Below, piece after piece: positions 1 to 42,578 of a DNA stretch of 64,000 nucleotides. Source of the stretch: Tubulanus polymorphus (lineage: Eukaryota > Animalia > Nemertea); the NCBI RefSeq assembly GCF_964204645.1, contig NC_134031.1, positions 20,777,910-20,841,909 on the forward strand, written 5' to 3'. A program made the position numbers and the translations under genes. The notes beneath the pieces were generated by a model. The model searched no databases. It saw nothing but the letters and a program-made list of their open reading frames with translations, and was not told where the DNA came from. Numbering within the stretch: the first letter of the stretch is position 1; every line of letters begins with the position of its first letter.

Positions 1-737
1 GCATGGGTGACACCCTGCAGGTCACTCAGATCGAGGTGAATTGCTTCCAAGCTCCGTTAGCTTGCAAACGTGGGTTGTAAGATTGGCCCCAGCAGATTTC
101 CCATTGCGGTACTGCATCATATTGAATGGCATTTAAAACAGATATTTTCTCACCAACAGTCGAGTTAACCGAGTCTGGAAAATGCTCATTCCTAAAAATG
201 GTTTAAAGTGGCTCAAAATTCTCATTATGTCATTGAAAGTTTGATGGACGTAATGTAGAATGTTTACTCATAGAATAAAAGGCGACTCGACGTACTCACT
301 ATAACCAACCATACGACAAATATATACACCTCTCTAGTGACATGACATAGGTTTTGTAATCATTTCTGTAAACGGATGTCGATTAAGTTATTCTTGCTGT
401 ACATCGAACACACACACACATAATGCATCTCTATAACTTCAATTAAAACAAGTGGGATTTATAGGATCGAGGGGCCGATTAACTGTCGCATTATTAACTA
501 CCTATCTGCAAAATGTCAACCATGTGACAATAACATATTCATTTTCGCTAGCGTTTGAATTCATCTAATTTTCTACGTACATCTGTTACTGTTCGATATG
601 AAATAATTTGGTCGCCGTTTCGCAATATCGAGTTTAGAAGTAAAAACATCGATGGTGATTTGAGCGGGTAATAATTCATTCAACTTCCGCCCCTCCCCCT
701 AACCCCCCCCCCCCCCTCCCCGTAATTAGTGCTACCG

Positions 738-877
738 GTAAAGCCCAACGCGCAGAGAAACACGTAAACAGGAGACAGAGACATGTTTCCGAGCGTTTAC
801 CCGTGTGTTGTGCGAAACATGGTTTCTGGAAGGGTGTTTCTGCGTTTCTCCGCGTCGTGCCGTTCGTTGGGCTTTAC
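738..877. mobile_element. MITE with 13-bp terminal inverted repeats
   Basis: GTAAAGCCCAACG (738-750) and CGTTGGGCTTTAC (865-877) are exact reverse complements. The interior has GAAAC/GTTTC motifs shared with 2981-3133. Confidence 0.7.
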
Positions 878-1888
878 TATGAATTCATAGTATACATCCC
901 TGACAAAAGAAATGTGTCAACATAAAATCTGTTGTTGGCTACTTTTGGTAAAAATGCCGTCATTTATATCAGCAGATGTGTGTACACAGAAATATACATC
1001 AAATCCCTAACGACGTTCAATTTCCCGGTATATAAGAAATCTATTCTGCGGGTCGTTGCTCCATACATCATCGCGCTTAACCATTCTCGATACGAGCTAA
1101 ATGTGATTATAGCGCCGCATTTTGAGGCGGTCTTGTTTTCGCAGCTTTGCCGCCAAATCGCACGCACCAGCTCCCGTCCTAATGAAATAAATCAGTCGTT
1201 CTTTACGTGCGTGACCTTGACGTCGTTCCGCTGTGACCTTGTCGGCGTTCTAAGCTGTCAAGCACTGATGTCCATACACAGTTCTTGGATTTCGAAAGGC
1301 ACAAGAATTGCGTTTGGACAATCACCACCAACAACCTTTTATTTCAAACACGGCTCCGTAACGCCTGAAAACAGACAGAGAGAGAATGCTATCAATATTT
1401 CACTATCGAGTTCCAGAGAAAATCGATAGTATTGCGCTGAAATAGAATCCGCATTTTTGTAGAAATCCGGAGACGTTTGTTGATATTCGCGTACAACCTT
1501 CAACCGTTCAGGCGGTAGTTCGACTGAATAGGGTTAAAGTTTTAACGCGCGACGATTTATGCAAAACCAACCCGACTAGAACCAAACACATGTTACCAGT
1601 AAATATATTATTGGATGTGATGACTATTCATCATAAAAACCGCTTTGAAAATATGTTACCTGCATATGCATACGTAGATATATATACTTCTCTATAAGGC
1701 TATATTTCAAACATTAATATCCATTAGTATTATAATGATTAACTCAACAGTTATCGTAAATAGAACTCTTCATTTTAATAATGTAAAAGGTTGTACAGTA
1801 TAGACTCTATGAAATACATATTATCCAACTCCCCCAAGGTGAACGCGTTTTACTGCCCAAAACGTCCGACCTGAGCGGACGCAGTCTG

Positions 1889-1993
1889 CAGGGCCCAATT
1901 GCACAATCGTGGCTTAAGTCCAAAACGAGATCTTAAACCATGACTGCTAAAGTTGATCTCAGACAGGGGTCTAGACTATGCAACTGGTCCCTG
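1889..1993. mobile_element. Short palindromic MITE-like element
   Basis: CAGGGCCCAATTGCACA ... TATGCAACTGGTCCCTG imperfect TIRs. Similar termini recur near 29590-29610 and 41590-41680. Confidence 0.5.
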
Positions 1994-2980
1994 TACGATA
2001 GTATCGAAATACAGACGAGTTTTCAGAAGATTAACTTACATTTCGAAACCTGAATTCAAGCCACCGACCGACGTTAACCATGTAGTATCAAGTGCAGTAT
2101 ATAGACCGTATCTATCCGCACGTTTCGCGTCGTCCTTGGAGTCGCCGAGAATATCTAAAAATAAAAAGACGCAGTAATCACCTTTGATGTCCCGGTAGGC
2201 AGCAGGAACTGGATTAGGCGACAGTTTTTTCGAATACACGCGCCGCGAGCCGAGAGAACAAGGAGAAGGAAAGAGGTAGACTCTCTGGGACGTTATAAGG
2301 CTACACTGATGGAGGCAGCTGAACCACAACTACACTATCCATTAAGGGCTAACAGCTTGCTGGTAACATATGCGACTGCACATATGCAGCTAGTAAAAAG
2401 ACCACGTCACATTACTTTTTTGTTTTCAAAATTATACCCATAAAGAGCCTGAAGTCATTTCTTAACACACAGGTGCGTAACTGTTCGAAGAGTACGAACT
2501 GGTGAGAACACTACGCGCTCGTTGATTGGCTGTCGAGTTTCAAATCAACACGACAACCTGCGTCTCGCAGGCTATAATAACATGCGAATAAAAACGAGTT
2601 GCGCGGTGCGACATCAATTTCAGAACTAATTAATTAAAATGATCAAGTTAATGGTCGGGTGCCATACGGCGACCGCGAAACCGAACCGGTTTAACACCGA
2701 TGTAAGTAGCCCTGGATTCATACAAAATGTGCATTTTAACATATATGAAACGACTTAAAAATTTATGAAAAATACGGGAAGCTCATCTTGAATTACTGAG
2801 TTACAATATGGTGTATTCTAATATAAACATTCCCGCGTTTAAATCGCACAGACACGGCTGTATAAATCCAACTGAAAATGAACGTCAATAAATCCAGATG
2901 TCATCAAACAGCCAAAAAGCAACGTACATCGATTTCCAGATTCGCAGCGGCGCAGCGGCGAATCGCACCCGACCAACTAT

Positions 2981-3133
2981 TTAACCCAACGAATACGACG
3001 CAGAAACACTGTTTCCTAAAGCGTTTCTCCCGTTTCGGGTGCGTTTCCGAGAAACTAGAAACATGGTTTCGGGAACAATGTTTCTGACAATCCGTGCTTC
3101 ACTGTTTCCCTGCGTCGCGTGACGTTCGGCTTC
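2981..3133. mobile_element. Degenerate copy of the 738-877 MITE family
   Basis: Shares CCCAACG start, GAAACATGGTTTC core and GCGTCG...CGTTCG end with 738-877. Confidence 0.5.
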
Positions 3134-4824
3134 AAGAAGACGGGGACGATTTGCCGGACGCCCAATGGTGAAATCTAGGCTCATAATGAAGAACGGTCCT
3201 GGTGTGTGTGTAGTGTGTGTAGTGTGTGTACTGTGTAGTGTGTACCGCTCGCATAATTTATCCGTTCGAGAAATTCAACGTTTCATAGATAATGTCTTTT
3301 TAAAAACATTTCACTCGTCGATCTCTTTTGTCGCGATCTCTTTTTCGTTTTGATATATGAAAAAAACGCTGTTAAAAGACACGGCATCATAAATCAAATG
3401 CTCTCATGACTGCACTTGAAAAAAAGCCACCGAGTTCACATTGTCCTTCCCGCCATGGTGTATGTGGGCCACATGTCGAGGTGTGTTACTATCCGAACTA
3501 ATATAAAAAAACGGGCTTTTAAAAAACTAGTTTCGAAATTTGAATGAAAAAAAAAATGAACCATGATTGTGAATTAACATCAGAGCGAGGAACGGCGTAA
3601 TTCTCAAATCTGCATAGAAAACGTTGGTCTAATAATTACTGGAGAATATTTCAGAAATTCATTTAAGAAAGTTAAGTTGCCGAACGCGAATATATGGAAG
3701 AAATGATAATAGATCGTTTTCAACGAATTAACGCAGAGAGGAAATAAATCTATATATGAACACGATACCGAAACGCGGAAGTCGCGAACAATCTCGCGTC
3801 ATCTCGTCTGCGAGATACGTCCCCGAGATGTCGCGTATACGCCGGGCTAACAATCCAGAGACTCGAGATGTGGAGAACCATCATCCATCACCAGAAGCTA
3901 TACAAGCCAAAGCGAATTTAGTATCTTATATTAGGACAGGCTGCCAGACAGTTGTATGATCGATGGTCGCGTAATCACCCCGGACTCGAGAGATGCAGCC
4001 TTGAATTGCATACGTCATCAAACATTTTACGACGAATATACTCTATATACAAATGTTCCCCAAGACAGAAGCGCGAAGACGTATGAAGTTCCTAACCTCC
4101 CAAGAGAGAAGCGAGCAGTAGCCGGGTCGTCTTTTGGGTTAGAAAATACTGCGCACTAATGACATCAGTGACTGGAAGCCGGAGCTCTATGCATGCCGCA
4201 TGCATGTTAAATACTAAGTAGTCTATATCAAAGCGCCGCTTATGTTCTGAATTTCACTTGGGAAATAAAATTTGTTCATTTCGAAATATAGCAATTCAAA
4301 CTATGAAAGTGGTTGCACTACCGATTCGATGAAAAGTTGCGGGTCAAGTCACAGATTATCTCGATTAGCAGTATCGACAATATGTTATATACCTCTCGAG
4401 GAGAATTATCTAAAATATCGGGCGGGATGATATCCGCATTGAGACGAAATTCTCTGAGAATTGAATAACCGCTTTTATGGATATCAACGAATGCTTAGTC
4501 ATCATTAGGCTGCTTCGAAATTTCCATTTCAAAGTGAGAGATACGCAGGACCTACAATGAACGTCATCATTATACTGTATATATCGTTACAGTCGCTGTT
4601 GACAATGTGAACGGACAAAGGGTCAAAGATCACCGATGATATTATGATTCGCCGAGAGCTTTGTCGGTCAATTCTTACTTCGTTTTCTAAATCGTTCGAC
4701 ATGAATTTTCACTTAAGACAATCTCGCCTACGCTTCAGCCAGTAAAAACTCCGTGAAGATGAAACTCGCGCGTATACAATATTGAAATTGATAAGACACG
4801 GACTGCTTGCAGTTTAGGCATATA

Positions 4825-29190: not shown

Positions 29191-32100
29191 ATGTCTCAAA
29201 GCAAATTAGATGACGTTGTTAGTTGGAGTCTGGATGAATGCAACAACCAGTTTGCAAAAACATTTAAAGCACTGCGCGTATCCTTTTAATCCCTTTGCTA
29301 ATTATCGCGTTTAATTTTTTAATTATTTTTGTTAGCCTAACTCGCAAATGCAAAAGGCCTTTGGAATTTCCAAATTTTTTGATGGATTAGAAATATTTAT
29401 TGGAAATAGGCATCTTTTTAGTATTACTGCGGCAATTGAGGATTCTACATGTGGCAAGGAAGCAATAATACATGGTTCACTTGTTCACTTGTTAATTGGT
29501 CTTTTGCATTTCAATATCTTCATCTCACATGACAATTTAACTCATCTAACAATTTAACACCAGTTTTGATATTCAATATCATAACTGAACTGTGCAACTG
29601 GACCCAAGGAGTGCGAAAGTGGTCTTATTAACCTTGAGACTGGTCTTACGTTGTTAGAGTAAGCAGCCTAAAAAATCCATCTCAAGGTTGATTGAAAATG
29701 AACTGAAATTTTGACGAAGTATGGGTGAGTGCTCAACACGTGCCATCTGTTGGTGCTGCAATTCCCTTTTAGTTTTTCTCCTCATTGCTTGCAGAGAAAT
29801 TGTATAGACCTACTTCGGAAAATTAAAAATCAAAATTGATACACAAAATATGCGTCCAGTTTATCAAAAATATCTAAACCTCACTGGGATTTTTATGTAT
29901 TACGCGTATCATTTATTTTGTTCACTTCTTTAACATACAACAAGATGAAGCTCAAGGAAGCGGATAATTTGAAAGAAACAGCAGGTCTGTTATGTTTTAT
30001 CCAGAAGTTGACTTGAGTTCGTTCAATAGTAAGGACTATGAAAGACTGTTTTACAACTTCATCGGTGTCTCATTTTTCAGGTGTGCTGAAAATTCTGTGT
30101 TCAGAAAATTTTGTACAGTCAATCGAACATGCCGATCTTCAAGTGCAACTATTTCCGGATATAAGTGAAAAGGTAAAAAAACAAATCTTGTTCAATTTAT
30201 TTGGCGGCTATGGAAGCTCTTTGTTCGTTTTACAAACTGGGATGATTTTTTGGGATACCTGTATCGCAAACCTGGTATTGAAACACAAATAAGGAAATTT
30301 AAGGTATTTCATCCTGGATTCAATGATGAAACAGATTCACTCATGCACTGAAGTTTGTCGTAGCGCGGTTCCGCTGTATGAGGCAGGCTTTATCTAACTG
30401 TATTTTAAAGGCTTACCCGATGCATGAATTGTTTTTGCAGGTTCGGGAACATGGACTTTCGACTTTTGCGGAAATGAAGGATTTCGTAGCTCAAGGTGAA
30501 AGCATTGAGCGGATTATCGAAAAATTTGAGGTATTTCCGACGACCGATGTAGAAATCTTTAAACTCTCTCTGAATCTTGAAGTTGAATTTTCATTCATTT
30601 AAGTTGTGGTTAAGTTTAGTTTAGTGCGATACCATAAATTTGTAGGACTTTGATTAGAATCATCCTTTATAGTTATGGATTGAAATCAGTTCATTAATTC
30701 TTGAACTCTAGAAATCGATGAAAATCATAACTATTAAGACTGATTTATAGGCTTATCTTATACGAAGAATATACGATATATAGAGATCATCAATCTACTA
30801 ACTTTGTTTTCTTTTTGATGATTAATAAATATTATTATTATTATAATTAACCCAAAAGAAAATGAGTAATACTGTAAACCATGTGTAAGTCGGATGTTTC
30901 TGGACCGGAAGTTTTTCCACGACTTACTTTGAGAAAGTCGGATTTTCAAGCTTGATTTCAGTACGCTCTGTTGATTCAGATCATAAGAATCAAACAACTG
31001 AGACGAGTTTCCAACTTAGTTTGGACGGAAACGAATTACGCTTGGTTTACCGTGTTCAAAATAGGAAAATATCGATAATAAAATGTCGATCATCTATTTC
31101 ACAGTATTTGAAGGAATGCATACATTGTATGAAAGTATGTATTGACAGCATTAACAAGAAAGAATCAGTCGATATAAAACATATCATTCAGATTGCAAAC
31201 GCAGTTATGGAACTTTTGCAAGTGTCCTATTCACATTATACGGTAAGAAATGTACAGCGTTGAATCTTTCAAAAGAACGATTGAATTTTCCTTTTAGAAA
31301 TAAATGATGATTTAGCCACGTTCACATGCCAGTCAGTCCCTTCCGATAAGCTGGTGTTATCACTGGTCCAGCCAGAGGAAACACTGTGGTTCGATTTTAA
31401 AGCAAAGTTTTTCTATTCACACTGGTCCAGACTTAGATTTAGAACGAACATGGATCAGTCTTTTTGGTCTGTCTGAATTGGTCCATTCAAAAATGAAATT
31501 TGGTCCATTCTAAATCGGAACAAACGAGAATTCTAAATAATGTAGTGTATAAAGGCAGCTTCAGGCTTGAAATTCGGGATCAGTTATTTGTTTGACATTC
31601 ACTCGCGTAATGCTGAAAACCTGCACCGTGGATGCTGGGAGAATTGACATCATCACCTTTTAGCATTATAAATTCCAGTAGTAATCGGCAGCACATCACA
31701 ACCAGCGATTCTTCAGCATGTACTCAAAAGTAAACAATCTCTGATATAAGACAACAAACATTTTCAAAACTAATTTATTTCTTAAGTGAAAATTCTTTTC
31801 GAACTAGTTGTTGCAAGCGCAATAACAGTGGATCACGCGGTCTCTGGTGAACTCAAGGACCAGATGATCTCACTGGATAGTGGAACATACAGTTCCCTGA
31901 AGGTTTGGTAAAGTAGATAGATGAATCTCTGAGATCGTTACGATACAGTTTTTACTATATTAAGTTGATATAGCTGTCTAGTTGAGTTAGCAGTCGATTT
32001 GGGAACAAATGCACAATATTCAAATGTAACCTAGTTAAGGTATTGTTTCACAATGATGGAATGTTTACAGTTAACGAGTCAACATTTTACGTATTTACAA

Positions 32101-35100
32101 AGCCTAAAGCGCACGACGCACCATTAGCACTGAACAGAAACAGTTAACTCTGGAGTGTATGCATTGTTTCAATTACGATTACTGGGAATTCTCAGCACTT
32201 GTGGCGCTGTAGGTTTGTATTGGCATTAGCGGGCAAACCAATTTATCCTAAGGCATAAACACAAATTCAGTTTCTTGTTTCGAGGATTTGTTTTGTGTAC
32301 GCTAGGCTTTAGACGCGATTACAAGGACTGTTGACAAATCACGCAGCTACTTCCGACCGGGTTATTCTTTATTTCTTCTTTTTGTAACGAGTCAGGAAAA
32401 AGTAGTTCGGTCGTTCGTCGTTGGCCGGATGTTTAACAAAGTAGCCTTTCGCGTCAAATTTCAAAAACATGTTATCAGAACATGACTTCAACGCGAATCG
32501 TGAACTGTCCTCTCCGTGAAAACTGAGCTCAAACTGCGCGCTGGTATCGTGCAGATCCGATTTTTGATACGGCTGAAAAATATTTAAAAATTTCTGAAAT
32601 GGACTCAAGAGAAAACCTCCTATCATTAAGCGCTACTGTCATACTCACCCTAGCCTTTAAAATACCGTCGTCCATACAGAGGATGTAGTTATTGTATTGG
32701 ACGTTTGTCGCCATGGTGCGAAATTGGTAAATAGCACCGTTATCGAAAAACTGAAACGCGTGAAACACAGCTGAAAATAATCGAAATTCAACATCTTATT
32801 TATGAAGACATTTCAAGCAAATTACAACCATTCAATCTTTGAAATTCATTTTTTCAAGCACTAACTATAGCGCGGACCCCGCTCAAGTCAGATCGTGTTG
32901 GACAATGAAAATTCATCTGCCTCAATTGATATCCGAACTGAATATATCCCGTATTCTCGAGTACAATTCAACTTGAGCAGAGTCTCGAGAGTATGTACTG
33001 ATGTCAAGTATCTCTTCACCTGTTCAGTTTGAACATCAAATATCTTGTCAAAACGACATCAAAGTACAGATATATAGTTGTGGGTGATCGACGGTCAAAT
33101 TCACAGAATTATCTGTTTAAAGTAAATAATTGGTAAATTTGGTAGTTTCTGTACTTACTATTCAGATCGTTACAACTTCCTTTAGCGTCGACTATTCCAG
33201 CATCATTAACTCGTAGATATCGATGAGACACACGTATGTTACTGGTGCACAGTTGTAAATATCGCGAGTCGCCGATTTCGTCGTCGTGTTCGTTTCCTGT
33301 GAGAAATATCAACCAGTCTTCGACCGTGTGATCAGACGTATCGACGACCTAGCAATAGAGTCATAGAAACATCAACCAGTCTTCGACCGTATGATCAGAC
33401 GTATCGACGACCTAGCAATAGAGTCATAGAAATATCAACCAGTCTTCGACCGTATGATCAGACGTATCGACGACCTAGCAATAGAGTCATAGAAACATCA
33501 ACCAGTCTTCGACCGTATGATCAGACGTATCGACGACCTAGCAATAGAATCATAGACATATCAACCAGTCTTCGACCGTATGATCAGACGTATCGACGAC
33601 CTAGCAATAGAATCATAGAAATATCAACCAGTCTTCGACCGTATGATCAGACGTATCGACGACCTAGCAATAGAGTCATATAAAACGTGATCGCGTGGAG
33701 ACAATATATTCACTCGTGTTGACACTGAGTAAAATCAATTTGAGATTTTGAATTTTTTCGTCGTTCTCGTCTCCAATATCAAGTTCAATCATCTCGTATG
33801 TTGAGTTATAGTAAGCTGATTTAGGCCCGGTATTAGTGTATTAAACGAGCTGATACGTGTACTGAAAGTTACTAAAAAGGAGGCCTGAAAAACTATTTGG
33901 AGCGACCGTATTCGACGGTTCACCAAACTTGCTAGGACCAGATCCGAGTCAGATTTGGCCCGTTATGCGAGTTTGGTCTTGAATGTAAAGAATGAATTTA
34001 AAGAATGTTTTTTATTCATATTAGACTAACAACAACAACATACCTGTTTCAATTCATAACAGGTGTGCTGTTTGTTCAATATGAACAGAAATGCAAGGCC
34101 TGACAATATCGTCTTACGCGGTAAACAACCTCAATTACCTCGCAATAGACGCCTCGATTTTTTTTGTATAGATTTTGCCCCATCTTCCACTGGAACATAG
34201 ATTGATTTACATTTGTGAAAGCACCTTTGCTTCTGAGACTTGAAAGCAAGCCGATAATATCTCTTTGAAAAAAATAATCTGGAATTGATTGCTGTGTTGC
34301 TTGATTGCTTTATCGACATTTAGTCATAGAATTGGGTTAACGACTTCGTGGGATTAAATCTGTCGTGGAGACTAAGTGTCTAGGCTGCCCAGTCAATGCA
34401 GGCATTACTATCACTGCGCTGCTTGCAACCAAAACCCGCCACACATTTATTTTGGGGTTCCAAATCTGCAAATTGATCTGTATTAAGTATATAATGTTAT
34501 ACACATACAGCGATTTTCTGGTAGTTTTATTGATCATTGATTTGATTTGATTCATTTGATGATTATCATGGTACAAATAATTGTTACATAGTTTATACAT
34601 ATAATGCATGACAATCATCAGGACCTCGGAAATCATTATGTGATTGTCAAGCCGAGGCCCTGGAGCAGATCACAAATGCAATTATGAAACGAAGGACGAT
34701 TGAGAATGATGGAATGATAATATTTGGATGATAATAAGAAGGATGCAAAATTCTACGTTAAATGATGAATGAAAAACCGATAAAACTCTTACCTCGAACT
34801 CTATGCCTGATATATTCATGTTATCTCTGTATATCTAGTTGTACGGTAGCTCGTATGATGCAGCTTTAGTCGACGCACGTTTCAATGAGTCCTGTTCAGT
34901 GTACGCTGTTTATATAATCTACCAATGCTTCGTGTTGTGTTGTGTCGTCCTACAGTTAAAATCAACTATCGATATTCATTCATCGATGGGAAAAGGTTGT
35001 TATGAAATACGTCCCTGGTTAGAGTTGATCGATATAATATATAGTAATAATCGGGACACAATGACACTTCAACTATACATGTTACTTCTGCATATAAATA

Positions 35101-38100
35101 CACTGAAAAAAATCATATCGACAATGAATGCTATCGGTGACCCTCATATATTGGTTTTGATGTGTTCAGCGGGAATCAAATTCTACAAAATGTATTGTTC
35201 GCCAATTATCACGTGCGTAATTAGTTTAAAACCTGGACTAGGTTTCAATGATATGGAAGAAAAATAGTCCCTGGGAACATTTTGAAATTTGTCAGTTATA
35301 ACCATGGTTTCTCATTGTTACTATGGTGGTTGTCAACCAGATTGAGGATTTATCCCTCGGGATAACATTGATACTCAGGCTATGAAATCAGGCCTAGGAT
35401 GGTAAGTTTAAAACCTGCTATAAAAACAAAATTTGAAAGACAGTGATTCTATTGGTATAATCATCAAGATTGGATTAAATTGATTCATTAACTCATTAGC
35501 TTAATGCCTTGTTGCCTGATTCTGCATTGCCAGGATTTTCTAGGACCCATTATGAAATCATTATTCCCATCATTGAATTATTATTTCACAACTCGTACAT
35601 GAATTTCAAGTCATTATTCTGTTGTCAGTAGAATCCATTACCCCTATACGAGAAATACTTTTGACATTTTATTGCCATTTCATTTTCTATTTTCTAGGAA
35701 AGCTTGGAGATATACAAGGATATGGTCAGAGGGCTGAAAATAGGTAGTCTATTCAACCGAAATCTTACGTTACAATTAGTAAGTATTAATGACACAGAGA
35801 TATTTCGGTCCGGGTCACACTAGCCCGTACCTGACCTGAGTCATCTATCCCAATATGATTCCCTGCGTCAAGGAGTGGGTTTAATTCCAGATGCCATTTT
35901 ATAGACTAGTTGCTCATAACATTAACCAGTCGACAACTGGTAAAATCTATTGTATTTGTAACTTTATAGTTAACTTTCAAGAGTAACTGGTCCTGTTTTA
36001 CTGGCGATCATTTTGGACAACCCAAATACCCAGCTGATGAATGATCCACCCACTAGCTACACCAGTACCGGTAGGATCTAATGTCTCAAACTTTTCCTTT
36101 TTTCCAGGCTTTTTCAAAACTTCTCGATAAAATTCAGATTCCTGCTGAAGCTACTGATGATGAAGTTCAACTATTAACCACTAGTTAGTAAAACCTGATG
36201 CACTGCATCTTATTAAGTCATCAAGCCAAAATGAGCTTGAACTGGTTTTCAAATTGCTAGGTTAATTATAGAACTGAAATTGGCTTAGATTGGATTTAAA
36301 TCGACGCAGGAACTGTAAAATTGCCCCTTCAAAACAGCATAAAGTACATGTGCTAGTATTTCTGTATTTTCAGTATGCAATAGATTCTGTGAAATAAGCA
36401 TGATACTAAAAAGGGTTGATGGAAGAATGGCCGTTGGTCCATGGCGTATAGTATCAAGGTAATAAATAGATAAACATATCATATAAAATTGAAGTAATGA
36501 TTGTATGATCACGGGTGTAACTCTAAACACTGGGGGTTTTTTATCAGACTGATTGAGCGACATCTCGAACATATGAAGAACAGTTTAGATGGAGATAGAC
36601 TTGTCTCTGGATTATGTATGTGTTTACTAACAGCTTGTAAAAGGCTTGATCGCAGAAAAGATGGTTGTTCTAAGGTATTTATTTACCATTGATGTTAGGA
36701 GGTCCTCCTGCCTTCTATGATAATGATTGTCGACAAGATAAAATCATCAAAATTCTATTTCTCGCCTCAAAGAAATATGCTAATCCATCTTTAGTGATAT
36801 CTTGATGTCACTATCAATCTTTAGCCTGGAACCACCCCTTCAGACATTGACTATTGTAGTGTCAAGTTTTGACGATCACTTTTTTGAAAGTGTTGTGATG
36901 AAATGACTCATTTCGGGAGTCCATTGTTCTTCTGAAAAGTGTCTGATGTGAGATTTCAAACACAAGTCGTGAAGACTGGACGATCATAAATATGAAGAAT
37001 GGTGGTAATGTATTAAAGGTCTGAGGGGTGGTTCCAAACAGTAGATCTTCATCATACCAGCCTACACTCATCTAAACCAGTAGTCAAAGTGAAACGTCAA
37101 AATGTTGTGACACATTACATAATTCACTTAATAGCCACAAACCAGACGATCCAGGTGCATTTTGGCCCGGGCCACCGTTCACACGAGTGCCAAATTTGGT
37201 CTGACTAAAAATGTAAGAAAAAACGTCGGACCAGGCCTGAGCCAAATTTTAGCACCGGTTAAATTATTGCCTGTGAATTACAACTGGTTCCTGAATTGAC
37301 TCACTTCACTTTGTTTAAGTATTGTTTAGTATCGAGTGAGTGGTTCACGTATGAATGCGCTCTCTTATTAGACACGGGCCAAATTTGACATGGGCCTAAT
37401 CTGGCCAAATTATCTCTGTGTGCTGGCTTATACATATGAAAGAAGGATACCAGATGTCAGACTATCTGACACATTAAGCTTCAAAATTTTTGTTTGCTCG
37501 TACCTGAGTTTAGCAGTACTGTTCTCATTTTGCAATTTGAAATTATAGTTAACCGTTGTGGATGAGGAAAAGTTGAAGATGTTAGTGGAAGTAATCAGTG
37601 TTCAGGTGGAAATTCTTGTCACGTTCATCAGAGATTTGACAATCGAATCATCCATTGATCTAATCTACGAGGTTTCCGTGCGAGTAAACGGGTAAATTAT
37701 TCATTTCAAGTTTTAGATTTTTTCTCTACTCTAAATTGAAAATGAACCTATCATTCAGGTATCAATTAGCTGCCAAGACCCACCTCCTTCAAATCAATAC
37801 TCTGTAATGATGAATGATGATTATTTGAAGGAACCTCTCATTTCAATGACTTCAACAATGTGAATTGTCTGTAATCAGTTTTGAGCATCCAGGCCCCAAA
37901 GTTTCAACTAGACAGCATTTTAGAATAATGAATGCCCCAATTCTGTATCAATGTCAGATAATTGATAAAGCAAAAAACTATATATGGTAAACTCTTCACG
38001 TAGGCTACATCCACAGAGTTTAACACCAGACCTGCCCACTCAGTACATACAACTTTTAGAGACGCATTTGTTTGGAGTGATGGATCCAATGTTATCATTA

Positions 38101-41100
38101 CTGATTAACAATACTTCTTTCTGTCATAAAGTCAGCTCTGTTGAAGGTAAATATGTTTGTCAGATTGTTATACCCGGTAATGTTGATTATTGTCCTTATC
38201 GAATCATATTTGAATATTGAAATTGTCAAGCGTTACCCCGAGTTGGCATGATGTCACAAGACCCTAACTTTCTTCTTATGTTCAGAGATTGATCGGAGTA
38301 ACCAGTTTCCTCGATGTCTTCTGCTGACATCTATCGTGTCATTACTCGCGAGAGCATCAGGTGAGCTCAATATTAAACCATGAAAGGTAACAAAGATGTG
38401 TTTGTAGAAAACTGTAGAAATTTTCCATCTCTTCTGCTGTTTTTAGCTGATGTAGTCGAATTATGGATGTTAAAAGTTAAAAGTAATATTGTGAAACAAC
38501 TATTCGAGTCAGTCAAACGGTGTAAGTTTTATAAAAAGTAATGAAAAATTTGAAGAAAGGTTCCCTGGGCCAATTTGACAAAAATGTTCAAAACTCCTCG
38601 AAGGTTTCAATTGTTTCTGGAGTCCATTTTTCCAAGGGCTTTCAATTTGTATACAATTCACGATTTTCACGTGTTAACATTTCACTTTCCCTAGAGTTGG
38701 ATATAAAAGAGGATATTTCAGTACCAGTATGTGAACAAGATTTTTGATCCATTTTAGGTCATATTGAGTCATGTTTACCAGTGTTGATACCGGTCATCGC
38801 GTGCGACGATGAATCTCCAAAACGGGTTACATTATATGAACACGTGCTCGACGGTTTGTCAGCGTTCGTTCGTAATTTACCTTCAAATCTTTTCCCATCT
38901 TTGGTACGTATGGTCTCAACATATTCGTATACCTGTACAAAAACATTGCAACGATATGTAACTTGTACTGTTTATGATATCCTTATTAGGACCCTGTTTA
39001 TCAGTTCAGGGTTAGGTTTAACTCTATGTAAAGATGTAAATGATTAATTTTCGATTCATTAACCCAGTCCAATCTTAACTCATAAACTTCGAAACTGAGT
39101 CCTGAACTTTGAAGATTATGTTTAATTTACTGTTTATCTATTCCTTAGGAAATAACATTGCTGGAAACAGTCGTTTCTCATGATGTAGTTAGTAGTTTAA
39201 TGGCTATTGATATCTGGTGTCTTGTATCGAGGTAAGACTCGAATGAATTCTCCTCTTTTCATCGAGGCATTTCAATAACTGGTGGACTGATATTAATCTC
39301 AGTATTCCAGAGTAATTGAGCAAAACTTACTGGTCACTTGCTTCGACTATCTCTTGGGAAATACGCTACATGCCTCTGCTCAACAGGTACCATATTATGG
39401 GTTATGAGTTTTCTTATATTTTTCATCTTATTGTCTACAGATATGGAAGTGCAGAGTTGTGTCGGGATCATTGTTTAAAACTGTCGGCTTTAGTCAAAGA
39501 TCGAAATGGAAGTCACCACATCGGCTACTCGTGCCTCATTCTCTTGCTCAAAAGATTATTTCAATTTCTTTCACCCGAACATCAAGTAAATAAAGTTTAC
39601 AAGCCTGTGATGAAATGTGAAAATTCCTCGTTTCATTAATCTATCTATTTCTTAACTTCAGCTCGTATTCTGCGATGACTATCCGATACAAGACAACCTG
39701 GAACTATGGTCAATTCTACCGCTGTCGTCAGTGAGTAAAAACGTCGCAGATAGGAATGTCAGTGCTCTATTCAATGTGTGTAAAACTGGTGACCTGAATC
39801 GCCGTAAACAACTACAGGTATAAAACATTTATCAGTGGTCGATTCATCAATCACTGTATTAAAGAGATGCATGTTTTTAATTTTCCTATAGGATGATACG
39901 GCCCCTTGAGAGAATATTTGTAATTCATCACATTCTGGGTATTGGGCAATACAATCAATCTTCATTTTCCACAGCCCATCCAAGTGCGCAGTATCCATTG
40001 TTATTGATTGACATGTGGACTCTACAGTTAAAACTATTCGACCCTATGGAACTTGGTCCAGAGCTATGCAAGCATTTTAAACGAAAAAAATCCACAATAC
40101 CACTGATAGCATTTTGATGGAAAGAATCTGTTGTATCCTCAATTCTATTATGTTCTCTCGATAGCTTCACTTATTGATTTTGATTTGTTTATTGCAGTGT
40201 TTGAGTTTAATGTTGTCACTAGAGCAAACCCCAGCAGTGATAGCATCGACTGTTAAAAGGCTGTGGTCTGATAACGCCAGCATGAATGATTCCGATTTCA
40301 ATGATTTGTTGAGATTATCGTCTCGTTTGATCGTACATTTCGATGAATCCGATTTATTCTTAGTAAGTGCTGAAAATTTATGTTTATACAATGAAAATTA
40401 GTAGGAGAGTTATTACAGTAAATCTCACTTAGCTCAGACAACTGGGACTGACAATATTGATCTGAGGGTAAGCGAAGTCCGAGTTTAGGATAGGAAAGTA
40501 CATAAGGTAGTCAGAAAAATGGTTTGTCTCTTCCAAGTTAGTCGAGTTGGTCAAACCTCTGAGTTGACCATGTGAGGCGAGGTATACTGTAATGTAAAAG
40601 AGAATTCTGTGTGCACTGGAGAAAATGTATCATCCAAATTATAAAGCAGCTCTTGAGTTGAAGTTAGTTCATTTTCAATGTTTTAACTCAGAGTCAAATT
40701 TATCTCAGAACTGGGGACCTGGGTCCAGGGTATGCTCCATATTCCAGTCATGCATTCTACCATGTTCCAGCAAGTTATCTTTCTATAAATGTGTTTGAAT
40801 GTTCGCCATATTATTGTAGATGCTGAACAGTACGTGGAAAAAGATAAACACATCTGCTGTAGAAGGAGCCCTGTTTTTGTCAGTCGCTGAATTTATGGCG
40901 AATCTTCGAAAACGTCAGTTTCATCAACAAACTGACCAGGTACATGTATTACTAATCACGAAGTTTGTTGTAAAGCCATCTTTTTCAATACCAGTGCAAG
41001 CTTCACAACAATGTTTTTTTTCTGCGAACAAATGAGACTTAATTGATAAAACATGAATCATGAAAAACATGAATACTGAACTGTAACGAGTTTTGGATGA

Positions 41101-42578
41101 AATGTCAAACTGCAAATGAAGCAAATCTCTTCACCATATTTTCATTATTGAAAACCTGAAATTTAGTATTACACAGTACGTATATATATATATATATACA
41201 GGGGGTACTGAAAGAGTAAACTCGTATACACTGGAAGAGGGAGTTAATTCTAATGAATGAAGTCGCTTTTTACAGAATGTTCGGATATTGTCGCTGATTC
41301 CGATGATTTTCTTGCGTTTGTTGAAATCTAAAATGCCGCTGATTGAAACGCGTGCGTACGAAGCATTCACGCAGTTCGCGGAGGAGACGAGTCACGGAAA
41401 TATCGTACCGGAATGTGTTCAACAATGCGATCAGTTACAAACCAGAGTCATTCAATTCTTGCAAAAGGTAAAATCTAGCGTAACCGATAAGTCCACTACA
41501 TTTTCTATAGGAATTTACCTTTGAATTTCGGTTTGAGTTAAGATTAATTACATTGTCCCCGCCTTGTCCAAGGTATTTCACTGCATGAAGCTCTAGTTGC
41601 GCAGTCATGCCTTAGATTTAAGATCAGTCATAGACTGGATTGTGACTGTCGATCATCAGGGCTGGGCCGGGTTGTGAACTAATGTTTTAGAACGATAACC
41701 ACACTCAAACGTGGTGAACGGATAATAAGATAAAAACCCACTATCCACAGATTAAAAGAATTTAAAAACAAGAATTCATTTATTCAATCAATCTAAAATA
41801 TATGAAATACACAACGTTTCGATCTCACCCATCGTCAGGTGTGGCACTCTAGGGTGAGATCGAAACGTCGTGTATTCTATATATTTTAGATTGTTCGAAT
41901 AAATAAATTCTTGGTTTTAAATTCTTTTAATCTGTAGATAGTGGGTTTTTATCTTATCAACGAATGTTTTATTTTCCCCATGTTGTTTTTCCACATGTAG
42001 GCGCCTCATGATTCGAGTGGAACATTCAATTTGCTCGAGTATTTGAAAGTACAAGAAACTGAACTGGATAAATTTTATTCTTCATCAGTTGAACCTTGTC
42101 TGAAAAGGAAACGTGATGACAATTCTGAAATCCATGAGGTAAGTTTGAGGAAGTTGCATATATCGAGAATCTCAGGAGCAAATAATTAAGTACGAAAATG
42201 TTTCCGTGAGCTGGTGTAGTTTATTCAATATTTAGACTTTATACTAATAGTTATCTTCCGGCTGGAATACTGTCGGGACGTTGAATAAACTACACAAGCT
42301 CTTTTTTATTTTCTCGTCTTTGTGGGATTCTGGTTATATTATCGTCTCAACACGGATATAGTGTTTTATCAATGGTGATTGATGTTGAATGCCTTTTATT
42401 TTTCCGTTGAAAGGTGGTTCATGAGGGTGATTCGTTTATCGATCAAATAGATAAAGCAGTTACTGGATTAGAAGCGCTCACTGACGATCACAGACGACCG
42501 TTACCCGATAGTTTACTATCTAAGTTATCAAACATTCAAAGCAGATTGAATCAGTTGCTGAATACTCCTACAGTATGA
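29191..42578 (+). CDS. FIRRM: FIGNL1-interacting regulator of recombination and mitosis (C1orf112/DUF4487), multi-exon
   Basis: Spliced exons read MSQSKLDDVVSWSLDEC..., ...LETHLFGVMDPMLSLL..., ...VTLYEHVLDGLSAFVRNLPSNLFPSL, ...SSLMAIDIWCLVSRYGSAELCRDHCLKLSALVK...LILLLKRLFQFLSPEHQ, ...ETRAYEAFTQFAEETSH. These match the remembered C1orf112 motifs (SLYQHVC, AMDAWCFLARYGTAELC, LLKRLFFFM). Stop TGA at 42576-42578, AATAAA near 42750. Some internal boundaries (about 39800-40200) are unresolved. Confidence 0.88.
29278..29944 (+). other. U12-type (minor spliceosome) GT-AG intron, FIRRM intron 1
   Basis: Donor GTATCCTTTT; branch-site-like TTCTTTAAC at 29926-29934, 10 nt before the intron end; no polypyrimidine tract; phase 0 join keeps the frame (...KALR|MKLKEAD...). 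Confidence 0.8.
32369..34819 (-). CDS. Leaderless beta-trefoil cytokine-like protein (IL-1/IL-18/FGF fold), 205 aa, nested antisense in a FIRRM intron
   Basis: Exons 34819-34793, 34189-34139, 34067-34044, 33348-33159, 32770-32649, 32572-32369, all GT-AG and phase-compatible (618 nt). Protein: MNISGIEFEWKMGQNLYKKNRGVYCEHTCYELKQVVDTSDHTVEDWLIFLTGNEHDDEIGDSRYLQLCTSNIRVSHRYLRVNDAGIVDAKGSCNDLNTVFHAFQFFDNGAIYQFRTMATNVQYNNYILCMDDGILKARPYQKSDLHDTSAQFELSFHGEDSSRFALKSCSDNMFLKFDAKGYFVKHPANDERPNYFFLTRYKKKK. The last three exons are well supported; the 5' exons are more tentative. Confidence 0.72.
33302..33680. repeat. 63-bp tandem repeat x6 spanning an intron/exon boundary
   Basis: AACCAGTCTTCGACC recurs at 33311, 33374, 33437, 33500, 33563 and 33626 (period 63). 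Confidence 0.95.
37150..37430. mobile_element. Palindromic GGCCAAATTTGGCC-type dispersed repeat (MITE-like)
   Basis: TTTGGCCCGGGCC, CCAAATTTGG and CACACG motifs shared with about 33900-33975 and 51780-51905. Confidence 0.45.
40416..40589. mobile_element. Tc1/mariner (pogo-type) MITE in a FIRRM intron
   Basis: TA|CAGTAAATCTCACTTA ... TGAGGCGAGGTATACTG|TA. Confidence 0.6.
41725..41957. mobile_element. About 230-bp near-perfect inverted repeat derived from a Penelope-like terminal repeat
   Basis: Arms of about 105 bp, ATAAGATAAAAACCCACTAT...ACACAACGTTTCGATCTCACCC and GGGTGAGATCGAAACGTCGTGT...ATAGTGGGTTTTTATCTTAT. The centre matches the 18730-18765 hammerhead family. Confidence 0.7.

Follow-up and report, generated by a model that had tools for sequence, protein, structure and literature searches.

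Vertebrate FGF genes have a core of three exons in which a phase-1 intron is followed by a phase-0 intron, and the FGF and IL-1 proteins are alike in their fold, the beta-trefoil, and in two introns that interrupt it at the same positions and in the same phases. In IL-1beta genes the last three introns have phases 1, 1 and 0, with the trefoil spread over four exons (PMC4880838). Invertebrates, too, have homologues of IL-1 (IL-1anc), which were reported in 2025-26 from across Eumetazoa, molluscs and a brachiopod among them (Fontenla-Iglesias et al. 2026, PMC13736523). The genes for these proteins conserve the phasing of the two central introns, most of the proteins carry an N-terminal PDZ domain, one sea-urchin member is cleaved by caspases, and nemerteans are not mentioned in the paper (PMC13736523). 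Here we describe a gene of the palaeonemertean Tubulanus polymorphus which has the intron layout of these families. It lies on the minus strand of a stretch of 64,000 nt (the window) of contig NC_134031.1, positions 20,777,910-20,841,909, probably inside an intron of a plus-strand host gene; coordinates given below are those of the window. Its public model is XP_074654467.1, an 'uncharacterized protein LOC141908350' of 180 amino acids (aa) that forms a singleton cluster. The reading that we favour, and to which we give roughly an even chance, is that this gene branched off the FGF/IL-1 ('cytokine-type') trefoil lineage and evolves fast, and that it is single-copy, transcribed, spliced and restricted to nemerteans.

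Four exons of the window (Table 1) rebuild XP_074654467.1 exactly in a script check, such that the gene has four exons and not the six that had been drawn in an earlier, sequence-only reading of the same DNA. In that reading the start ATG at 34819 and a first exon at 34819-34793 had been proposed, both of which agree with the public model, and the peptide strings quoted for the 3' exons are indeed the translations of three minus-strand exons. Its other proposals for the 5' half did not survive comparison with the public model and with sequencing data. Four public runs (X1-X4) contain sequence of the locus, and their assembled contigs were compared with the window; X1, with even depth, behaves as DNA, and X3 behaves as RNA. 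In X3, a contig covers 33159-33327 of exon 2 and is joined to exon 3. It therefore continues through 33297/33296, where an acceptor had been placed; in the public model exon 2 starts at 33348. The supposed middle exons fall in a region (33736-34231) where the depth of X3 is zero. At the 3' end, by contrast with these revisions, contig record 17 of X3 (depth 225) joins 32770/33159 and 32572/32649 exactly, from which it follows that the gene is transcribed and spliced. Both junctions are of the GT..AG type on the minus strand (GTAAGT...TTTTCAG and GTGAGT...TTTTCAG), and the 388-nt intron between 33159 and 32770 has zero X3 depth. A further X3 contig (contig 16, 1159 nt) contains the last exon and a long 3' untranslated region, spanning at least 32551 down to 32000.

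The two introns that lie within the domain interrupt it first in phase 1, where the codon of T73, directly after N72, is split behind its first base, and then in phase 0, after R113; this order of phases had been noted in the sequence-only reading, as had the likeness of the three-exon core to FGF genes, and both points are upheld by the genome of the worm itself. A genome scan with the Pfam FGF profile, PF00167, finds two canonical FGF genes elsewhere in Tubulanus polymorphus, and both have phase-1/phase-0 introns. Hairpin Gly108 in the gene described here, Gly114 in the gene of the FGF9-like protein and the equivalent Gly in the second FGF gene are each followed by the phase-0 intron at a distance of 5 residues. 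The phase-1 intron falls within the 13th codon past Gly60 here and within the 12th past Gly66 in the gene of the FGF9-like protein, an offset of a single residue, and exon 2 of the second FGF gene is also entered in phase 1. In terms of the predicted strands, which were assigned to exons by DSSP from low-confidence AlphaFold2 models, the two introns bracket strands 4-7, and not one trefoil unit. Since both introns are kept at the same structural places and in the same phases, we infer that the gene descends from the FGF/IL-1 lineage.

As to the two FGF genes themselves, the first (C5:23421013-23423928) carries the FGF9-like annotation and encodes a protein of 306 aa whose N-terminus is hydrophobic and signal-like and whose tail is long and basic. 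The second (C2:30047276-30050703) encodes an NWFVGFKKNG box like that of FGF1/2, and a pattern search did not find its first exon.

The protein very probably folds as a beta-trefoil, judging by a language-model structure and weak sequence matches. The ESM Atlas contains the exact protein, modelled with a predicted template modelling (TM) score of 0.75 and a predicted local distance difference test (pLDDT) of 0.70, and among the 30 nearest Atlas structures the family sets nearly all include beta-trefoil families (TM by query 0.60-0.68), namely fascin, DUF7910, ricin B, FRG1, acidic FGF (TM by match 0.76) and FGF8-like proteins. Language-model neighbours are likewise mainly trefoil families, both for the whole protein and for exon 4 alone, in the latter case at low recognition. 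Sequence matches in the PDB are only to Symfoil designs, at E 0.006 when residues 36-180 are searched and at E 1.3e-4 when the query is a profile of the three internal repeats; the Symfoil series consists of symmetric designs derived from human FGF-1. The trefoil part was expected from the sequence-only reading to be about 145 aa long, and S36-K180 is indeed 145 aa, with an isoelectric point (pI) of 8.86 (16 acidic and 20 basic residues) and the C-terminus KKKK. The preceding residues 1-35 have a pI of 4.05, with 10 acidic residues and no basic one, and contain the sole Trp of the protein; residues 36-180 have none. A hydrophobic leader is absent, as had been noted, the highest Kyte-Doolittle mean over 12 aa being 0.58 within the first 50 residues, whereas the secreted FGF9-like protein of the worm reaches 2.27.

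Two groups of observations weigh against the favoured reading, the first of which concerns resemblance and fold. With a cut-off of 24 bits and matches reported to E ≤ 10, PF00167 matches neither XP_074654467.1 nor its residues 36-180, nor the locus in the genome scan, whereas the FGF9-like protein, as positive control, scores 78.2 bits. BLASTP against the latter protein gives E 0.24, and pairwise similarity to both worm FGFs is not significant. The highest match in Pfam as a whole is to Fascin, which is sub-threshold (14.6 versus 23.1 bits). Structure prediction by AlphaFold and searches with Foldseek, which had been put forward as a check of the sequence-only reading, were carried through to results of little use: single-sequence AlphaFold2 models have a pLDDT of 30.5 for the whole protein and 37.7 for residues 36-180 and are unusable, and Foldseek and VIA searches with the low-confidence model of residues 36-180 return only noise. 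Necessarily, therefore, the fold depends on one language-model prediction. The trefoil claim of the sequence-only reading is in this regard supported by the Atlas model, the Symfoil matches and the sub-threshold Fascin match, and not by AlphaFold2, in whose low-confidence model the strands are placed as a 12-strand trefoil requires. There was no alignment from which to fold the protein because no homologue was found in the databases searched; a MAFFT alignment to FGFs was out of register by one trefoil unit and was for that reason left unused in folding.

The sequence signature of FGF is also unmatched on inspection. The PROSITE pattern reads G-x-[LIM]-x-[STAGP]-x(6,7)-[DENA]-C-x-[FLM]-x-[EQ]-x(6)-Y, of which G108-I-L-K-A fits the first half, while the Cys is replaced by Ala125 and Phe127 lies 5 residues too far on. 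In other words, the C-x-F-x-E whose absence had been pointed out in the sequence-only reading is indeed missing, and A-Q-F-E-L stands in its place, 5 residues further from the intron. Relatives of any other kind were not found either. Genome searches yield no paralogue; an exhaustive HMMER search, made with exon 4 only (67 aa), returns XP_074654467.1 itself (100%, residues 114-180) and two repeat proteins, which are taken as chance matches; word searches return nothing for exon 4 and only the protein itself at full length, and one aimed at gathering an FGF family returns the FGF9-like protein of the worm alone. Pfam matches no single exon and no domain in residues 1-45. The apparent orphan status of the protein is accordingly limited to the exhaustive search with exon 4 and the full-length word searches, the searches as a whole not being exhaustive.

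The Fascin match raises the question of whether the protein is instead an intracellular trefoil of the fascin/FRG1 type, or a leaderless sugar-binding trefoil lectin, unrelated to cytokines and with introns that resemble those of FGF by coincidence, which we consider rather unlikely. Fascin (PF06268) is the top Pfam match, with E 0.038-0.073 over residues 122-158, the clusters at the head of both Atlas lists are Fascin, FRG1, DUF7910 and RicinB_lectin_2, and leaderless single-domain trefoil lectins do exist in other spiralians, the mytilectins of mussels being an example. On the other hand, the Fascin match reaches only 13.7-14.6 bits against the cut-off of 23.1 and covers only 37 residues, and in a genome scan with the Fascin profile at E ≤ 1 the locus is not listed. 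Ricin-type lectins are marked by Q-x-W motifs, which are absent here, residues 36-180 being devoid of Trp, and sequence searches of the PDB at E ≤ 10 bring up neither a natural lectin nor a fascin chain. Moreover, the trefoils of fascin genes in this genome are not interrupted by introns: at C5:8823160-8824596 and C4:26418125-26418841, four and two trefoils lie in single open reading frames of 518 and 299 aa, respectively. Trefoil genes in this worm therefore do not share the FGF-type intron layout in general, and it is unlikely that two introns would match FGF by chance in both place and phase.

A different proposal, and the one at which the sequence-only reading had aimed, is that the protein is an IL-1-family cytokine similar to those IL-1anc members that have no PDZ domain, made as a leaderless pro-form from which a caspase cut after Asp35 (EIGD/S) frees the 145-aa trefoil. 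The protein is indeed leaderless, and its short N-terminal piece ends in Asp directly before predicted strand 1. Its central introns have phases 1 and 0, which fit IL-1beta (PMC4880838) and IL-1anc (PMC13736523), and a PDZ domain is absent from a small subset of IL-1anc proteins too. Strand 9 reads R-F-A-L-K-S and strand 8 F-E-L in the numbering of the low-confidence models, and the L-K-S of predicted strand 9 stands where IL-1 proteins often have F/L-E-S. The phase-1/phase-0 layout cannot discriminate IL-1 from FGF, however, because FGF genes share it, and the remaining evidence makes the proposal decidedly improbable. Pfam IL1 (PF00340) has no match at E ≤ 10 on the protein and none at the locus in the genome scan, in which a single spurious match occurs elsewhere (E 1.16). 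Neither for the 30 nearest Atlas structures nor for the 30 feature matches do the listed family sets include an IL-1 cluster, and both lists include FGF. The domain, at 145 aa, has hairpin motifs (..L.....G.V/L..) that match the FGF-1-derived designs.

The proposed processing is no easier to reconcile with the sequence. Inflammatory caspases usually have an acidic P3 and a bulky P4 in their sites, and EIGD has neither. A caspase site at EIGD/S is a guess that nothing in the data supports, and the IL-18-like spacing suggested for the last exon is likewise conjecture. The 'pro-piece' itself had been taken as about 60 aa; it comprises 35 aa before S36, of which 16 come from a local minisatellite, a tandem repeat of 63 bp. 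With no Pfam IL1 match, no IL-1 cluster listed in the Atlas and no PDZ domain, the specific kinship to IL-1/IL-18 claimed in the sequence-only reading is not supported, and an identity as an IL-1-like cytokine is conjectural. Within the FGF/IL-1 lineage, an origin from FGF is likelier than one from IL-1, since the gene has three trefoil exons and not four, the domain has 145 aa, the Symfoil matches derive from FGF-1, and the Atlas clusters include FGF and not IL-1.

The second group of observations that count against the favoured reading concerns the 5' end of the gene, where the minisatellite is situated. Every copy of the array carries the same acceptor (..TTGCTAG/GTCGTC) and the same 16 codons when translated copy by copy. 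Exon 2 begins inside the last copy, which is the only one to continue into the trefoil frame; the five upstream acceptor copies all run into a stop right after the 16 codons. The array is confined to this locus in the genome, and the repeat peptide gives six protein matches genome-wide. RNA contigs lie over several copies, upstream ones included, and point to alternative use of the acceptors, to intron retention or to transcription that starts inside the array. At the productive acceptor, an X3 contig (33304-33358, depth 152) with a base specific to the last copy spans 33349/33348, which means that much of the RNA is unspliced at 33348, and in RNA of this kind the trefoil is not preceded by an in-frame ATG. 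Exon 1 is covered by no X3 contig, nor is an exon-1 joint among the listed X3 joints, although X3 contigs drop rarer isoforms and the absence of a contig cannot show the absence of a transcript. What speaks for exon 1 is its place in the NCBI model, together with a good donor site, the A at position -3 and, upstream, TATATAAA, which from its sequence may act as a TATA box; the start codon at 34819 is a predicted one, taken from the NCBI model.

It is conceivable from these data, if improbable, that the gene is decaying or mostly non-coding, in the sense that RNA is made and protein rarely or never, because most transcripts fail to join the start codon to the trefoil frame. The depth of the contig that spans the sole productive acceptor is near that of the exons, which is what such a gene would give, as are the missing exon-1 joint and the five acceptors that end in a stop, and no relative was found by which conservation could be shown. 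Set against this are a frame that remains open for 171 codons over three spliced exons, a pattern in which three of the four single-nucleotide polymorphisms seen in the coding sequence are synonymous (the fourth is V49A), the loss of rarer isoforms from contigs, and the prediction of the productive isoform by the NCBI pipeline. A more elaborate scheme, in which a nemertean-specific leaderless cytokine from a common FGF/IL-1 stock is kept inactive by an acidic, minisatellite-derived pro-piece until a protease removes it at Asp35, and in which the number and choice of the repeated acceptors tune the amount of active protein, appears most improbable.

If the protein is an offshoot of the FGF/IL-1 lineage, as we favour, it would be expected to stay in the cytosol or nucleus or to leave the cell by a route that bypasses the endoplasmic reticulum, in the manner of FGF1/2, which are leaderless, and of FGF11-14, which are intracellular. 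Its function may be that of a small binding module, whose basic face and lysine tail could hold on to something acidic, for instance sulfated glycans, phosphoinositides or nucleic acid, and whose acidic N-tail could mask the basic face.

Table 1. Features of the gene for XP_074654467.1 in window coordinates.
Feature	Position	Strand	Remarks
Exon 1, coding part	34793..34819	-	9 codons, MNISGIEFE; donor GTAAGA; public model
Exon 2	33159..33348	-	190 nt; acidic tail from V10 and predicted trefoil strands 1-3; ends in phase 1 (N72, split T73)
Exon 3	32649..32770	-	122 nt; entered in phase 1, left in phase 0; predicted strands 4-7
Exon 4, coding part	32369..32572	-	67 codons and TAA; predicted strands 8-12; C-terminal KKKK
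3' untranslated region	31774..32368	-	Runs to the sole AATAAA (31779-31774); signal scan
63-bp tandem array	33302..33684	-	6.1 copies, 96% matches (Tandem Repeats Finder)
Candidate TATA box, TATATAAA	34909..34916	-	About 90 nt upstream of the ATG; read in the sequence

The nesting of the gene in an intron of FIRRM (31243-35697), another proposal of the sequence-only reading, is plausible in that plus-strand splice signals are present at 31243 and 35697. Further along the window, at 38769-41404 (+), three exons match Pfam DUF4487 (FIRRM family) at profile positions 228-583, below threshold, and the naming of the host gene as FIRRM fits these DUF4487-type exons. Within the host intron, the segment 35224-35347 has a contig depth of about 35,900 in X1 and of 590-4,450 in the other runs, with many loose ends on both sides, and looks like a very high-copy dispersed repeat. 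In X2 and X4, which stem from one sample, a common contig of 209 nt joins 33941-34057 to 32466-32557, which is a step back of 1592 nt. The junction has 4 nt of microhomology and splice signals are absent from it, such that the join may reflect a chimera, structural variation or proximity ligation.

The wider interest of the gene lies in its combination of an FGF/IL-1 gene skeleton with a sequence that has no family signature and no relative in the databases searched. Divergent members that escape all profiles bear on the origin and diversification of the FGF and IL-1 cytokine families, and nemerteans are a phylum in which very few signalling proteins have been studied. The link to IL-1 would no longer be new in itself, because invertebrate IL-1 homologues have already been published. 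Should relatives appear in other ribbon worms, they could define a new trefoil family; should none appear, the gene would illustrate the extent to which a cytokine-type trefoil can diverge.

Among the known systems closest to the protein are the FGFs, especially the leaderless FGF1 and FGF2 and the intracellular FGF11-14. As in these, there is one domain of roughly 140 aa that probably folds as a beta-trefoil, is basic, has a Cys in strand 1 (L-x-L-C) and is made without a signal peptide; the phase-1 intron stands before strand 4, and the phase-0 intron 5 residues past the Gly of the strand 6-7 hairpin. Unlike FGF, it has an acidic N-tail of 35 aa and a KKKK end. With fascin and FRG1, which are leaderless intracellular proteins, it shares the pattern F-E-L...R-F-A-L-K-S...F-L, although it has one trefoil domain where fascin has four. 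With the IL-1 superfamily it shares a leaderless trefoil with an N-terminal extension and central introns of phases 1 and 0; it differs from IL-1beta, which has four trefoil exons, in having three, with the N-tail sharing an exon with strands 1-3. Only 35 residues precede the trefoil, in which there is no PDZ domain of the IL-1anc kind. Like the IL-1anc proteins, finally, it has diverged in sequence too far to be traced by ordinary searches, which for IL-1anc is stated in the paper on them (PMC13736523).

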